Of a DNA stretch of 64,000 nucleotides, positions 13,001 through 55,472 are shown in pieces. The notes below the pieces were generated by a model. That model was not told where the DNA came from. It saw only the letters and a program-made list of their open reading frames with translations, and searched no databases. The stretch spans positions 26,288,001 through 26,352,000 of the forward strand of contig OZ241830.1 in NCBI GenBank assembly GCA_965202585.1, in the 5' to 3' direction. This stretch comes from Thalia democratica. Taxonomy: Eukaryota. The stretch's first letter is position 1. Each line of letters begins with the position of its first letter. The position numbers and the translations under genes are program-made.

Positions 13001-16000
13001 ATTGTAATTTTTAATAAAAATTATTCACGTATACAAACCTTATAAAAAACATCTGTATTTTATTGTATCAGCAACAACAGTAGACAGTATTTTAACATAC
13101 CCTTAAAAGACCACCAATTTGAGAAGCAATGTAGGCAAACAGTATGTAGATCAGTCCGAAGAAAATGACGAGAAATCTGCTGAGATTCTTGTAACTTTTC
13201 TCACTCCAGTTAGTGTAAGGCCTGATGAAATCTTCCAAACTCACGCAAGCCATCGCGTTTATTCCCGATGATATTGTGCTGTTTGAAAATGTATTTCTAT
13301 AAACTTTTGTAAAGTAAAATTGTAAACTTCTCGACTTTTTTACTGCGAATGTAATTTGTAAGTTAAAAAAGTTACTGAAATTAATACAAACTTTTCTAAG
13401 CTTTAAACTATCTTTATATCTTTTAGAAGAAATTTTCACAAAATTTTTGCGCAACAATTTGTTGCTTTTTCGATAAGTTATAACAAAGTAGTTAGTAAAT
13501 ATAAGTTAGTTTGTATAATTATGATAATCAATTTGATTATAGAAAAAACAACAGAGAAACTAACCTCAACGAACTGCTGTAAACACCAGCTACAAACATT
13601 CCAGGCACGCCAGGAATATAACTTAGAATATCCATTACTATGAAGGGAAACAGCTGTAAAAAGAATTAAAATTGGTCATGTTTTATATAAATAGTTAGAT
13701 ATCTTTAAAGTCTGATTTTGTGACAGTCTACATTTTTAGTTATTGAAAGCGAATTGTATAACTGTTTGTAACTGAAATACTAAAAAGGTAGTAAAAAATT
13801 GTGTATTAAATGTGAATGACAAGCACCACAACATAGCAATTCAGCATAACCTAGTGTCGTAAAAAATACAACTACAAATATAAACTGTATTGTAAAACAT
13901 AAAATGAGCCAATAAGGTGTTAGATACTTTGCGTAAACAGAAAAAAGTTATAAAAAATAGTTTTTTAAAAGTTATTGTTTTGAAATAGAGCTTTGTAATC
14001 TTAATATTAATCTTTACTTGATCGCCTTTATTGATTTGACCGTTTTTAATAGGATCACAGTTCTTGTAAGTCGAGTATATCACCAATCCGGTCATTCCCG
14101 CCAGAACAAGGATTATTATCAAACCTACGCTGTTCAACATAATGGCTCTGTAATAAAGTTTAAAAGTATTTAGTTTAATAAAACTCATCAACATATTAAT
14201 TTCATTTTTAATACATAAATAAGGTAAAAAATCAACCAGCTTAAGTTTTTAAGTTTGCATTAAATTTATCTTAATATAACAAAAAATTGTCACTTGCATT
14301 ACTAAAAAAAGCATCAACTTAAAAAGCAATAATGTTGTTAATTTAATGTTATAATAACAGTAATTGGCCGCAATGAAAAAAAATCTAGTATATTAAGTAA
14401 TTTACAGTTATATTTTTTAACATTCTTGACGATTTGTAGATAACTGAAGAACGTTCAAAAATGTTCATTATAAAGTTTTTTTTGTTAAGATGCTTACATT
14501 TTTGCATGTCTTTTACTTTTGCAGCAGACGTATCTTTGTACTTGGGCCTGATTGAGACCGTTTGTGGCAAGCCAAAACACTGTGCCTCCGATTGTAATCG
14601 ACCAAAACGTGTGCCTTATTCTCGGGTCTAGCTCAAAGCTGTTATAAAGTTGGTATGGTTTTACTTTTATAAAGTTGGTAGAAACAAATTTTATGTAATG
14701 CAATTAAAAAATTGTTGAAATTTACTTTACATTTGTAGTATTGATAAAAATAGTTTTTAAACAGTTAAACTGCTGAAAAACTTTCTGTAAAGTAAATATT
14801 TCAGAGTGAAGCATTTTAGGTTGATTAATATTTTTCTGATGTCTTATGCTACCAGTTTGTATCAAATAGTTTGTTCAATTACTAAACATCAACGACAAAG
14901 AGAAATATGATTTTACCAGTTTTACGAGAACATCAATTAGCTTAACAAAATCTTGTTCAACATTCAACAAATTATAATATGATTCAAGCGTAAATTAATG
15001 TTCACAAATATAAACGAAACAAAAACTACCACAAGAAACTGTTTTTTGTTTTAATAATTATTACCCGTTTATAAATATTTATATATTTTTTTATAATAAA
15101 ATTCAGCATGTTATTATTTATCTTAAAACCAAATGTTTATTTTTTTCAATTTTTTTGTTGTTTATTTTTTATTCAAACACTCTTAATTAAACTTCACGAG
15201 TATCAAAACAAACTGGTTGAAATCGATTCTTCCCCCATCAACTGCATCCCTCCATATGTTCCCGAACCCTCCCTGATTGATCGATCCCTGAATGATGACT
15301 GCTACAAATCCGAACATCATCACCACTGTTTGGATCACGTCCGTCCATATTACTGCTTTTAATCCTCCCTGAATGTACAGTGAAATAAAGTAAATTGAAG
15401 TACTAATGTGCGAAAACAAAAGATAGGGCTAGTTTATTTTAAAGTGAGATGAAGCTAATTTTATGCTTTTTATAGCAGCTAATTAATATTTATGAACATA
15501 GAACTAATAATAAATTGTTTTTAGTTCAATGTTTTCTTGTTTATTTTTAGGTATGAGATATACAAATCAAGATGTAAACAAAGTTCTAAATTACTTTGAT
15601 ACAATAACTTAGTTATAAAACTTTAAAAGTTTATTTTTTGTAACTTTAAAATTTTTGACTTTTATTAATGTTTTAGAAATGCAAGCAAGTAGTTTTACAA
15701 ATAATTAGATTAAAACTATCGCACTGTTAATAAATTACAAAAAAAGCGCAATTTTTAAGCTCTATAAACAGTACAACTTCAATAAAACTGTCAAGTATGG
15801 AATGTTAATTTGACTAAAATACTTTAAAAAAAGTTAAAACAATTAGATTTTTAAATTTGAGATACAAAGTTTTATATCTATAAAACGTTTTGCATACTGA
15901 CTTAGAAAATTGAAATTGAAGAATTATTAATAAACTAACTAATGAAATATAGAACATACAACAAACTTGTTAATTAAGGGTAAAATATACAAAAACTAAC

Positions 16001-47394: not shown

Positions 47395-50312
47395 CTAAAA
47401 TATTAATTAAGTTAATATTTAAAATAAAGAGAATTTAAATTAACTGCAGTTAATAGAGTATCAAATCTTAAAAGTTTTTTTTAGCACTCTTTAATTTGAA
47501 TGTTTTCAAATTTTTTGCACTGCCCGCTCTAATTAATTTGCCTTAACAAGACACTATGGTCTCGAGTTACAATCATTAAACTAAGTAAGAAAAAAATAAA
47601 AACGAACAAAACGAATTATAGACTGCAAAAATTTATTTAAACATCAGTTTATGTTTTTATGTATAAATTTGTAAATGCCTTTTACCATTTAACTTCAAAT
47701 GTTAATTAAAATAAATAGATAAAGTTCATAACCATTCGACCAGATTTTTACTAAAAGTCTCTTTTCAAACATTAATATACATGGGAAAAAATAATATTTC
47801 TTTTATAAGTAGGTTTATTTACAAAGTCTTTAGTATGATAGCTTTTAACTTTTTTAATAGTTAAAACATTTAACAAATTACTGTAAAAAGAAATAACATG
47901 ATAGCTAATTGTGTATTTATTTTTTCTCATAAGTTTTTATTGAAATAAACAAATTTAGTCAATTAGTTTGCTGTTTAATTACGTAGTTTATCCTGTTACA
48001 ATTTATATAATCTAATTTATAGTTAAATAACTACATTTATACGCAATTTAGAATAAGTCAATAAGCCTTACTTATTGTTCCAAGAAAACTATTATTTTAC
48101 TACTAAAATACCATTACAGGTTTCAATTTTTCATTATAAGATATGGGTAAAATTTTAAATTTCAATAAGTTTGAACTACTTTTATTTTGTAAACTCGCAA
48201 TGTTACTTTTTGTTTGTTTTATAACACACGAAAAACGGTCTTGTCTTGGACAAAATGTTAAAAGGTACCAGAGAGGTTTGTGACACGAAAACCGAAGTGT
48301 TTTTAGTTCAATGCGTCCTAAGACCAAAAATTTGGAACGTATTTTTTTCGTTTAACAGCTTTAACAATACACACATAACAAACAGAATTGTTTTATATTG
48401 TTTTCATTAGTAAGTTGACTTTTTGTACAATTAAACTTATTTTACATTTTTGTATAATATTTTTGGATATTTTGATATACAACTTGTGTTATTAGCTGTG
48501 TATATCTTGTATGTATTTTATGCTAAAACTTATAATATTAAATTTACTTAACTATCATATTTTTGCAAAAGTAAACTAAACTATTAAGCATTAGATACAA
48601 TAAGTAAACTATATAAAGTTAAGACCAAATATATCAGTTAAAATATGTTAAAGTATTACACATACTTATTTATTGATGTGTAAAGCCGTACATTATAAGT
48701 ATTCTTAGATAAATTTATAAAAACTGGATTTTTCTCGAAATTTGTTATTCTCCATAATCAAGTTCAAAGTTTCTGTTTTAATTTTATTTTGATATAATAA
48801 GTTGACAATTAAGTTACCAGATTTGCCACACATTTACTCAAACATTTACGTTTTGAAATATATTTTACCTTTTAAAATAAAAACAAATTAACTTTCATTC
48901 AGCACTTAATACTCTCTTTTTAGTTTTATTTTACAAATGTTTCGTATTTTTTTTAAAATAAACAAATATAACATGCGGAAACTGATTAAACACTGCAACA
49001 CTTTATTTATTTCTTAACTTCCTCTTCTGTTAATAAAATTGTTGCTTATGTAACAACAATCACACTTTTTAAAAGGTAACTAATTTTGCAACTGTTTTTA
49101 AAAGCCTCCGATATTATATATTTATAATTCATATGAAGTGAATTTTCTCTTAAATATGTTCTAACTTAGTTATGGTAATCTAAAAAATCCTACTTGCCTG
49201 TTTACTCATCTTGTTAAACTTTTATGTGTTTTAATTAAAAATTAATTTACACAAGACTATCTATAAGTTTAAAAATCAAAAAAGGTTTGTAAAAAATATT
49301 TTTATTTATTGTTTAAATTATGTTTTATTTAGGGTATTTAAATTTAACTTAAAACATAATCGTTGTTTATATGAACATTTTAAAATTTTATAGTTCTAAA
49401 ACATGTTGAAAGCTTTTTGTAAATAATAGTGAACGTATATAATTATAAAATTAAAATTTAGCTGTATTAATATATGACTAAAAAGAACAGTTAAAATTGT
49501 AGATCTTTTTAAAATATTAAGGCTAAAATGTAAAACATTTAAAATGGTGTTACTATAGATCAGTAATTGTCAGGCTTTTAAAATTAGCGGGAAAATTTTC
49601 TAGAAAAAATATTTAGACCGCATTTACTTAAACTTATATATAACTTATCAAAAACAAAAACACTATTTAAAACCAAAAGTTAGATATAAATAGAAAATGA
49701 CTTGTAATTAGTATTAGTTAAATACATCGCCTAATTGTAAGTTTCTACGACAAAAACTGTTGTTTTATTCTTTGAAAACATATTTTTTTTGCTGAAAAGT
49801 GTCTAAGGACTGCATATTTTTCTTTTGCAACTGCATTTAGCCTACGAGCCACAGTTTTTCTGTTCTAAAGAAAATCGCGATTTTCATTGTTGTAACTTTC
49901 AATGTTCTACAAAGTTCTGAAAGCTTAGGTTTTGTACGTATAATAATTTTATTTAAAGTCTTTAAGTCAATGCCTAAACAAAGTCCTTCTTTTATAAATA
50001 AAACCTATCTATTCATTTATGGCTTCAAATCTCAAAGGTAGTTGAGTAACAAGAATTTTTTCAAATTTTTCAGTTAAAAATAGATAAAAATTAAGTGCAC
50101 AATAAGAAAATGCTTTGAAATGGTTTTTGAAAATTTTAATAATTGTTAAATGATTATCACAAAATTAAATTTATTAAAATAAGTATGCTGGTCTTATAAC
50201 ATATAAGGAAGTGAAGTATTTAATTAACTTCCGCAAAAAAATATTTTCCCCTTTAAATATGAAACTTGCAAATTATTTTCAGTATGTTGAAAAAGCAAAT
50301 TTATTTTACACA

Positions 50313-51714
50313 ATGAAAAATTTTTTAGTTAGTTTCAAGTTTTTACATTTAACATTTAAAAATAAGTTTACATAACTATAATTTATTTTCTTAGCGTTTT
50401 CTTGATCTAAGTTTATTAGTCACAGAGATTATTTTTAATTTTTAGTGTATTAGTTTATTGAAAAAACGAAGCATACGAAAAATTACTAGAAAATTTTTGA
50501 TTTAAGGACCTGGGTACACAAAAAGACCTCTCGGTCATCGAGTTGCATACCCAACTTTTATAAGTCATTGTTAGAAAACTTTAAAAAATTAAAATACATA
50601 AACGTTTAAAATTATAGAATTAAATTATAGAATACAGCTGTACGTACTTTTGTTGTGTTGAAGTTATAAACTGTAAACGTGTATTACGTTTATCAAACTA
50701 AAATATGCCTCAATTCTACCGTTAATTTTTAAGTTTATTTACAAATAAACAAACATTTTTACACATTAGATTCTAACAATTTGCATTGGGGGGTTACTTG
50801 TGAGCGGAAATGTGGTGAAAAGATCCGAAGATTATGAATATTACGACTCCGATTACTACGCATCTGATGGGGAACCTGCTGAGGAAGATTTGTTTGTTAA
50901 AACGACCAAAAGTGGTGTTGATGCTTTGATATTTGGTTACAAAGAAAAATTTGACGTGAAGTCGAAGTTTATCAACACACTTTTACTTGCACAAGAATAT
51001 AAGTTAGCAACTTATATTTATATAACTAAAACAAACTAATTATTATGTTTTATTCAAAGCTTATAAAAACTATATTTTCTGAAAAAAAAAAACTCTGAAT
51101 AAAACCTGTTGTACTTCAATTTTATTTTTTTACAAAAATTAATTATTCTATTTTAGAATAGTTTACTAAGTTATTCAGTTGATAATTTTTTAAAATGTCA
51201 ATTTTAGTGTTAACATTTAAATAGTATTAGCTTAAAAGTAGCTAAATTTTGTATAATTCATTTCTTATATCGTACAAAAAACTTGTCACATTATTTTTCG
51301 AAAACAGTAATACAGCTATTATTTAATTTTTATTAAAAAAAACTTTAAACGCAAAAAATTAAATTTTTTATTTTAACCGTTCTAAATAACTACTTTATTA
51401 AGTTTAATTTCGAAAGCGGAGCAAGAGTTAGCGAGCAATGGACCACAGTTGAAAACAACTGCACTTTCTCCCCACTGAAAACCCCCACTACGAAATTCGT
51501 TAACATCTTCGAAGAGGGGATCATGACGTGTCACGATGACGTAAGCGGTGACGACGTCACAATAGAGTACAAGCAGTGCACGACGGAAGGCGCAGATTTT
51601 TGTGTGGCGATGGGAGAACAATTGGCGGTGGGTTTCGAAAAAATCATACTTCCTTTTTCACAGCTGGCAGATTACTTCATCGTTCCCAACTGCTGCACGT
51701 GCTACAAGAGTTAA
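50313..51714 (+). CDS. Secreted Spaetzle/neurotrophin-like cystine-knot protein (170 aa)
   Basis: Exons 50313-50327 (MKNFL, lower confidence), 50770-50955 and 51403-51714, all phase 0. Signal peptide MKNFLILTICIGGLLVSG, KR site, acidic Tyr-rich pro-region, then 7 Cys ending VTIEYKQC...DYFIVPNCCTCYKS, resembling the Spaetzle-family D-x-F-x-x-P-x-C-C-x-C terminus. Confidence 0.75.
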
Positions 51715-52097
51715 AACTATTTTGTTGACAATCATAATGTCAACTGTTTTATTCTAACTTATTTGAACTTAAGAAGCTTTTCTACAGCATATCCAGTAAA
51801 CTTTGTCGTTTAGTTGCCAAATAAACTAGTTATGTAAAACTTGAAAAGAACAATTATAAATCTATTTAAATTTTCAAACTTCAGCACACAACATAATCTT
51901 ATTTTGTCGTCACTCGATTGAAATATTTCAAGTTTGATCGATTTGAGTATCTTGAAATTAAAGTAAAAATTAATTTCAAATCCTTGAAAGTTCTTTGCTT
52001 AACGAGAGAATTTTATGTAGAAAATTAAAGTCTTAAACTGTTATTTTTACCAGTTAGATAACATGACATTCAAGGTTTCATCTTTTATACTGTACAG

Positions 52098-55013: not shown

Positions 55014-55472
55014 ATGAAGTATCTAGTTGTGTTTTTAGCTTTTCTCGTTTATTCTACATGCAACTGTACAGTACAGAAGTGCTACAGTTACGAAACCAAC
55101 GACCCGAGATTCAACAAATCCGATCCCAAAATTGAAACTTGCACGCCTCCTTGGAACGCTTTCTGCGCATCGGCGACCCACAAAAACGGCGAAGTTCCCA
55201 ACGAGACGTGTGAAGATGATGAGTATTGCACGGAACTCGGTTGTGTTGGTGATAAGTACTGCAAAGAACCGGGAACCTATGAACACGATTACCCGGGTTT
55301 GAGAAACGTGAGGTTCAGTATGACTTGCTGCAACACGAATTTATGCATTAACTTTGAAAAAGAATCGGAAACGTTGAACAGCGAAACTTCCAGCGCAGCA
55401 CAGCCTTCTAACAAAATTTGTTTTCATTTGTTGTTTTCCACTTTATTTTTAGTTTTCTTCATGCTTTATTAA
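55014..55472 (+). CDS. Intronless Ly6/uPAR (three-finger) domain protein with signal peptide and predicted GPI-anchor signal, 152 aa
   Basis: Single ORF; signal peptide MKYLVVFLAFLVYSTCNC; 10 Cys in the mature domain ending CCNTNLCIN; S/A-rich omega region, then hydrophobic tail ICFHLLFSTLFLVFFMLY with no cytoplasmic residues. Confidence 0.88.
   Translation: MKYLVVFLAFLVYSTCNCTVQKCYSYETNDPRFNKSDPKIETCTPPWNAFCASATHKNGEVPNETCEDDEYCTELGCVGDKYCKEPGTYEHDYPGLRNVRFSMTCCNTNLCINFEKESETLNSETSSAAQPSNKICFHLLFSTLFLVFFMLY

Follow-up and report, generated by a model that had tools for sequence, protein, structure and literature searches.

A seven-cysteine secreted protein from a probable salp genome, a candidate ligand of the cystine-knot cytokine type

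What kind of protein does the three-exon gene at positions 50,313 to 51,714 (plus strand) encode, and to what kind of animal does it belong? The gene lies in the window, by which we mean the whole stretch of 64,000 nucleotides that was analysed, and its exons, when spliced, give a coding sequence (CDS) of 546 nt, corresponding to 181 predicted amino acids, which include a signal peptide as well as a C-terminal domain containing seven cysteines. The first-pass annotation of this DNA had described the product as a Spaetzle-like cystine-knot ligand in a probable cnidarian genome. The gene is functional and transcribed, not a chance open reading frame (ORF), with expression shown in a related species. 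Of the Spaetzle-like description, the secreted protein gene and the cysteine plan were borne out, but membership of the Spaetzle family was not, either by profile or by alignment: the protein is a demonstrable member of no named family, and its assignment to Spaetzle has no support from alignment, profile or structure. We favour, with our confidence evenly poised, a salp-restricted ligand that is probably dimeric and belongs to the cystine-knot cytokine superfamily without being tied to any one subfamily.

The three exons, the signal peptide, the KR site, the acidic tyrosine-rich stretch and the seven-cysteine C-terminal domain that had been described earlier were all present where they had been placed. 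The features of the locus are given below, where L001 is an intron-less contig from a JGI marine metatranscriptome, which encodes a 177-aa orthologue (P0004), and L003 and L004 are ENA contigs from relatives.

50252..50259, plus strand: TATA-like box TTTAAATA, 25-32 nt 5' of the inferred transcript start; placed by inference, relative to the 5' end of the orthologous L001 cDNA
50284..50312, plus strand: putative 5' untranslated region (UTR) of about 29 nt, with an inferred start; L001 aligns at 77 % identity after its first 8 nt
50313..50327, plus strand: coding part of exon 1, MKNFL, with which the signal peptide begins; donor GTTAGT; counterpart in the orthologues MKVYI or MKVFI
50328..50769, plus strand: intron 1, 442 nt, 24 % GC, with a fragment of a high-copy repeat inside it at about 50472-50595
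50770..51002, plus strand: exon 2, acceptor TTAG, donor GTTAGC, phase 2; aligned by nt 54-287 of L001; codes for the signal peptide's remainder (to 50808), then KR (50818-50823), the Tyr-rich acidic stretch (50824-50889) and the conserved middle region FVKTTK...FINTLLLAQEY
51003..51416, plus strand: intron 2, 414 nt, 18 % GC, phase 2; acceptor position matching that in L003 and L004
51417..51714, plus strand: coding part of exon 3, with the entire seven-cysteine domain; acceptor AAAG; stop codon TAA at 51712-51714
51460..51462 and 51700..51702, plus strand: first and last cysteine codons of exon 3, which also has the conserved NNCT sequon and the C-terminus PNCCTCYKS
51715..52097, plus strand: 3' UTR, minimum extent as given by the orthologous cDNA alignment; AATAAA at 51820-51825; UTR identity 75 %

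The signal peptide corresponds to residues 1-18 (MKNFLILTICIGGLLVSG), with MK, a hydrophobic core and VSG, and is followed by NVVKR, the KR of which occupies residues 22-23, and by the acidic Tyr-rich stretch SEDYEYYDSDYYASDGEPAEED at residues 24-45. The product of exon 3 consists of 98 amino acids with exactly seven cysteines, at positions 15, 38, 54, 62, 92, 93 and 95, and ends in DYFIVPNCCTCYKS. The eighth cysteine of the whole protein sits in the signal peptide, and the number of cysteines in the mature protein is odd. No paralogue of the gene was found within the 64-kb window.

A word-based search in the frame of exon 3 gave one cluster of six proteins with 75 % identity across the domain, three of 177 aa from JGI metatranscriptomes and three of 88 aa from ENA assemblies. 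The protein encoded by L001 crosses both predicted junctions exactly (MKVYI|VIAIC... and ...LAQEH-N-GASIG...), and nt 281-940 of the contig align with 51418-52097 of the window. Contigs L003 and L004 are genomic and carry an AT-rich intron whose AG acceptor coincides, to the codon position, with that of intron 2. The evidence for splicing comes from the orthologue cDNA and the genomic contigs of relatives; the runs containing the locus are otherwise DNA, and the single RNA run reaches just part of exon 3. The marine metatranscriptome contig X4 spans 51434-51740 at approximately 92 % identity. Guanine plus cytosine (GC) content also separates the CDS (42 %) from the introns (18-24 %).

The gene is under purifying selection, which is strongest in the cysteine domain. 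The ratio of non-synonymous to synonymous substitution rates (dN/dS, Nei-Gojobori) was 0.30-0.42 overall, 0.21-0.27 in the cysteine domain and 0.42-0.70 in the N-terminal part. Exon variants seen in three DNA runs, from the same or a very close organism, comprised nine synonymous and seven non-synonymous changes, with no indel, frameshift or stop. The seven cysteines, the KR at residues 22-23 and the DY.YY core were conserved in all full-length orthologues, and homologues turned up in close relatives only.

The first 8 nt of L001, ACATGGGG, resemble the remnant of a template-switch oligonucleotide. If so, the contig would reach the true 5' end of the mRNA, which would start at about 50284 and carry no spliced leader, and the TATA-like TTTAAATA would lie 25-32 nt upstream of that start. 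Downstream of the gene, approximately 380 nt past the stop codon (51715-52097) align with nt 572-940 of L001 at 75 % identity, extending beyond the AATAAA at 51820-51825. With intron 2 at a comparable identity (79 %), the probable cause is low neutral divergence and not conservation of an element. The repeat fragment in intron 1 (50472-50595) has a word depth of about 150,000-220,000 in the three DNA runs, compared with 55-85 in its single-copy flanks, and from loose ends that share flanks it can be seen that other copies continue beyond it on either side. Neither a second copy in the 64-kb window nor an Rfam match was found for it.

The host of this gene is most likely a pelagic tunicate, a salp of the Thalia group. 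The GC content of the window is 24.5 %. In a 2026 comparison of 38 tunicate genomes, that of the Thalia democratica genome is given as 25.3 %, with a value almost 17 points higher in the CDS, and Hydra is quoted as 29 % (PMC13746493). A cnidarian host, as had been proposed from the sequence, would account for the very low GC content and the short AT-rich introns, both of which are Hydra-like, but the values for window and CDS together are nearer to those of T. democratica and the orthologous contigs all come from marine samples, namely metatranscriptomes and metagenomes, so that we consider it highly improbable. The description of the protein as a Toll ligand of a non-bilaterian is lost with it, the genome being very probably that of a tunicate, and so is the supporting argument from the split Toll-like receptor (TLR) system of Hydra. 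Scans of the window for the Ciona spliced-leader pattern and against Rfam gave no taxon marker.

The N-terminal region bears on how such a ligand would be released. The only conserved basic pair is the KR at residues 22-23, 4-5 residues after the likely signal peptide cut. Among the orthologues compared there was no conserved basic site before the cysteine domain; the window has GAR where the orthologues have GAS. This makes release from a pro-domain in the manner of Spaetzle or NGF unlikely, and the approximately 75 residues before Cys I are probably retained in the mature protein, as in IL-17 and unlike the pro-domain of Spaetzle and NGF. The acidic Tyr-rich segment had been called a pro-segment; the stretch exists, but with no conserved basic site between it and the cysteine domain that designation is doubtful. 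Its tyrosine cluster is likewise present, but conserved only in the core S-[EK]-D-Y-x-Y-Y and not in the remainder (DSDYYASDGEPAEED). Sulfation of the tyrosines in this acidic core is plausible.

The cysteine plan is one of the points in favour of a cystine-knot ligand. The seven cysteines were invariant across seven sequences, as was the NNCT sequon, with CC-x-C three residues before the C-terminus. Drosophila Spaetzle C106 (PDB chains 3e07_A and 4bv4_L) has cysteines at 10, 47, 54, 68, 98, 99 and 101 and ends in IPSCCKCALKTG, so that the seven cysteines and the P-x-C-C-x-C end which the first-pass annotation had attributed to Drosophila Spaetzle were confirmed from the solved chains; Aedes Spz1C, with LPSCCKCA, is alike. 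The plan of Spz1 and Spz2 has been described as six knot cysteines and one extra cysteine adjoining Cys V, with no others (PMC2772990). The salp protein fits this plan in count and order, but differs from C106 in the spacings of Cys I-II and Cys II-III. Its loop lengths are 22 residues from C1 to C2, 23 from C2 to C4 and 30 from C4 to C5, compared with 36, 20 and 30 computed for Spaetzle. They lie within or near the range spanned by Spaetzle, IL-17A, NGF and PTTH. When the cysteines are read in order, C15, C38, C54, C62, C93 and C95 fit Cys I-VI, with C92 as the interchain cysteine, which would give a full knot. An alternative register, in which C54 and C62 are Cys II and III, also fits and gives a ring of normal size. 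The odd number of cysteines in the mature protein argues for a disulfide-linked dimer.

A number of results weigh against the ligand reading. Neither register is free of difficulty: in the in-order one the ring segment C2-x15-C3 exceeds in length that of every family compared, and the alternative one shares EGAD with the C-EGADQP-C of Spaetzle but leaves no Cys IV. The first-pass annotation had proposed a HMMER comparison with Spaetzle, NGF, IL-17 and Noggin, and no family matched: hmmscan against Pfam-A (E ≤ 10) of the domain from the window, the full-length orthologues P0004 and P0006 and all seven members of the family alignment (A2) gave no Spaetzle, NGF, IL17, Noggin or other cystine-knot match. 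Phmmer against all PDB sequences (E ≤ 10) returned one chance match and no cytokine, and a search of the PDB with the family profile (E ≤ 10) was empty. When the window domain was compared by BLASTP with Drosophila Spaetzle (its C-terminal 65 residues), only 13 residues aligned (LADYFIVPNCCTC with VQNSFKIPSCCKC); hhalign of the family alignment against a mini-profile of Drosophila and Aedes Spaetzle, which is thin and of low power, gave 7.7 % probability over 11 columns; and global alignment to C106, calibrated against shuffles with the cysteines fixed, scored the window copy at z = 2.15 and an orthologue at -0.19. None of these three comparisons showed a likeness to solved Spaetzle outside the terminal motif. 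AlphaFold2 produced no usable model, its confidence measure (pLDDT) being 36.5 with the single sequence and 40.5 with the seven-sequence alignment, and Foldseek of the low-pLDDT model against the PDB and Swiss-Prot models found E > 0.5 and TM < 0.32, with CNOT2 and COMM domains at the top, which is noise.

Against 1.84 billion representatives, phmmer with the exon-3 domain returned three matches only (P0001-P0003), which were rejected as spurious, each hitting TCHEDLSA. These three are long proteins of tandem repeats of about 50 aa, translated from satellite-like DNA, in which summed short matches are misleading, with E down to 7.5e-22. It failed to recover the genuine cluster of 75 %-identical orthologues, which shows gaps in that library, and its silence is for this reason weak evidence. 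A scan of metagenome contigs with the family alignment gave 212 pattern matches, of which none was confirmed, and a word search seeded with Drosophila Spaetzle (C-terminal 65 residues), intended to gather family members for a profile-profile comparison, found no candidate within the allowed length range. The seed is identical to PDB 3e07 and 4bv4. Two other matches were also set aside as chance, one of the orthologues to Ig_NOMO of Pfam (E 0.019-0.059, under the cut-off) and one to the arginine deiminase of NCBIfam (E = 0.17).

Language-model neighbours point the other way for two of the orthologues. For the 88-aa domains P0007 and P0005 the neighbours in the ESM Atlas were Spaetzle first, followed by mixed Spaetzle/NGF/IL-17, IL-17, NGF/BDNF and Noggin clusters. 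The scores were 0.80-0.87 overall and 0.86-0.87 at the top, with 160-170 shared features, and the ten best family-bearing matches belonged to one clan. The lead threshold of the tool is 0.9, and lower scores are leads only; that the orthologues scored below it, with low recognition (1878), and that the domain of the window itself scored 0.57, to unrelated ShK clusters, add to the points against the ligand reading given above. The signals from the language model probably rest on the same cysteine pattern, and hence are not independent of the likeness in cysteine plan.

These neighbours and the plan itself are where a true Spaetzle-family member, acting as the endogenous ligand of a tunicate TLR, would find its support: seven cysteines in the Spz1/2 arrangement with P-x-C-C-x-C, Spaetzle at the top of the neighbours with the 160-170 shared features, and the local EGAD match within the C-x6/7-C segment. 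We nevertheless regard such membership as quite unlikely, given that there was no match to PF16077, that similarity to solved Spaetzle was limited to 11-13 residues, that the Cys I-II loop has 22 residues and not 36, and that the lack of a conserved basic site before the knot domain leaves no activation step by a protease cascade; a literature search found no paper on a tunicate Spaetzle.

IL-17 clusters were also among the neighbours, at 0.83-0.85, and the long N-terminal part, in which no pro-domain cleavage site is conserved, would suit a highly divergent cytokine of the IL-17/Trunk type, signalling via an IL-17 receptor (double FN3 and SEFIR), a pathway that is kept in tunicates. The spacings of 22 for Cys I-II and 30 for Cys IV-V are near those of human IL-17A (21 and 31). 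Tunicates possess IL-17, IL-17R and CIKS, and sequence similarity among IL-17s is low (PMC11087794, PMC4517768). The alternative register, lacking Cys I and IV, resembles the T2 type, the only one reported in tunicates. Against this, there was no PF06083 match, hallmark motifs are not evident, the spacing of Cys II-III, 4 in IL-17, is here 15 or, in the other register, 7, and a full six-cysteine knot would conflict with the report that tunicates and vertebrates have lost complete-knot IL-17s (PMC11087794). On balance, an IL-17/Trunk-type identity seems unlikely.

The same negative results could mean that the protein is a lineage-specific secreted Cys-rich protein with a fold unrelated to the cystine-knot cytokines, in which the Spaetzle-like cysteine count and the CC-x-C are coincidental; such a protein might, among other roles, build or modify the tunic or the feeding mucus, serve as the precursor of a defence peptide or act in reproduction. 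All tests based on alignment and profiles were negative, AlphaFold2 found no fold, the family was found in close relatives only, its rate of evolution is fairly high (dN/dS reaching 0.7 in the N-terminal part) and the window copy has no cytokine-like neighbours in the language model. Yet two orthologues each point to the one clan of Spaetzle, NGF, IL-17 and Noggin, and the order of the cysteines, the extra cysteine beside Cys V and the position of the C-terminal motif agree with Spz1/2 (PMC2772990). The negative profile results are moreover weak evidence, because IL-17s and Spaetzles retain little sequence similarity (PMC11087794). We therefore treat an unrelated fold as a real possibility, though one that we are inclined to doubt.

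For the favoured reading of a cystine-knot-type ligand, a mechanism can be proposed. Signal peptidase would cleave after VSG18, and a proprotein convertase would then take off NVVKR, leaving an N-terminus of S-E-D-Y-x-Y-Y that may be tyrosine-sulfated. The C-terminal approximately 85 residues would adopt a fold of the type found in the cystine-knot cytokines, the superfamily of Spaetzle, neurotrophins, Trunk/PTTH and IL-17, with disulfide pairs I-IV, II-V and III-VI when the seven cysteines are read in order. The seventh cysteine, which adjoins Cys V, would form an interchain disulfide, and the resulting covalent dimer would bind a cell-surface receptor, which could be either of the leucine-rich repeat (LRR)/Toll type or of the FN3/IL-17R type.

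Elsewhere in the window, a single-exon ORF of 152 aa at 55014-55472 (plus strand) has a signal peptide, many cysteines, MTCCNTNLC and a hydrophobic C-terminal tail. From these features it looks like a glycosylphosphatidylinositol-anchored Ly6/uPAR (three-finger) protein; it had no Pfam match, and the exact protein was absent from the contig index. Two ORF fragments at 13092-14194 (minus strand) resemble, by eye, exons coding for an SLC5-type membrane protein, a sodium:solute symporter.

Tunicates form the sister group of the vertebrates, and their IL-17s are reported only as the incomplete-knot type (PMC11087794). A secreted protein that is conserved and expressed in salps and has the whole Spaetzle-type plan of cysteines would bring in a further family of ligands. 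It is possible, but we think unlikely, that a Spaetzle/Trunk/ancestral-IL-17-type ligand with a complete knot of six cysteines, and with a seventh that links the chains, has been kept in salps. If this were true, it would contrast with the reported lack of neurotrophin signalling in tunicates and with their reported loss of all complete-knot IL-17s. The salp protein would be a definite candidate for tests with the ectodomains of tunicate TLR and IL-17R. Should the fold prove unrelated, it would be another lineage-restricted secreted protein, of modest interest.

Among known systems, the likeness to Spaetzle C106 (Drosophila Spz, PDB 3E07/4BV4; Aedes Spz1C, PDB 7B1B; PF16077) extends to secretion, seven cysteines in the same order with the extra one directly before Cys V, an odd count that would suit a covalent dimer, P-x-C-C-x-C close to the C-terminus and a Cys IV-V gap of 30 in both. 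The two differ in the Cys I-II gap (22 in the salp protein, 36 in Spaetzle), in the Cys II-III gap (15 and 6), in the pro-domain cleavage site before the knot, which the salp protein lacks, and in their hosts, a tunicate and arthropods.

With the neurotrophins (NGF, PF00243) and Trunk/PTTH the protein shares a six-cysteine knot plan ending in C-x-C, and NGF clusters are among its language-model neighbours. PTTH (Bombyx) also has a seventh, interchain cysteine and the same 22 residues between Cys I and Cys II. NGF, Trunk and PTTH are cut from their pro-domains at a basic site just before the knot, whereas the salp protein has no such site, and no neurotrophin match was found in Pfam (PF00243) or in the PDB by sequence or profile (E ≤ 10). 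Ciona is without neurotrophin, Trk and p75 (PMC2772990), and Trunk is reported from cnidarians to amphioxus (PMC11087794).

From the IL-17 family (PF06083, including the Ciona IL-17s) it differs in lacking a Pfam match and recognisable IL-17 motifs, and in having C-x15-C or C-x7-C where IL-17s have C-x4-C. Tunicates keep IL-17, IL-17R and CIKS, with the complete-knot IL-17s reported lost in them and in vertebrates (PMC11087794). In common with this family, which together with its receptor is known in tunicates, the salp protein is small and secreted, of similar length and highly divergent in sequence, with an N-terminal extension that is probably kept in the mature protein and a putative C-terminal knot region that ends in C-T-C and a few further residues.

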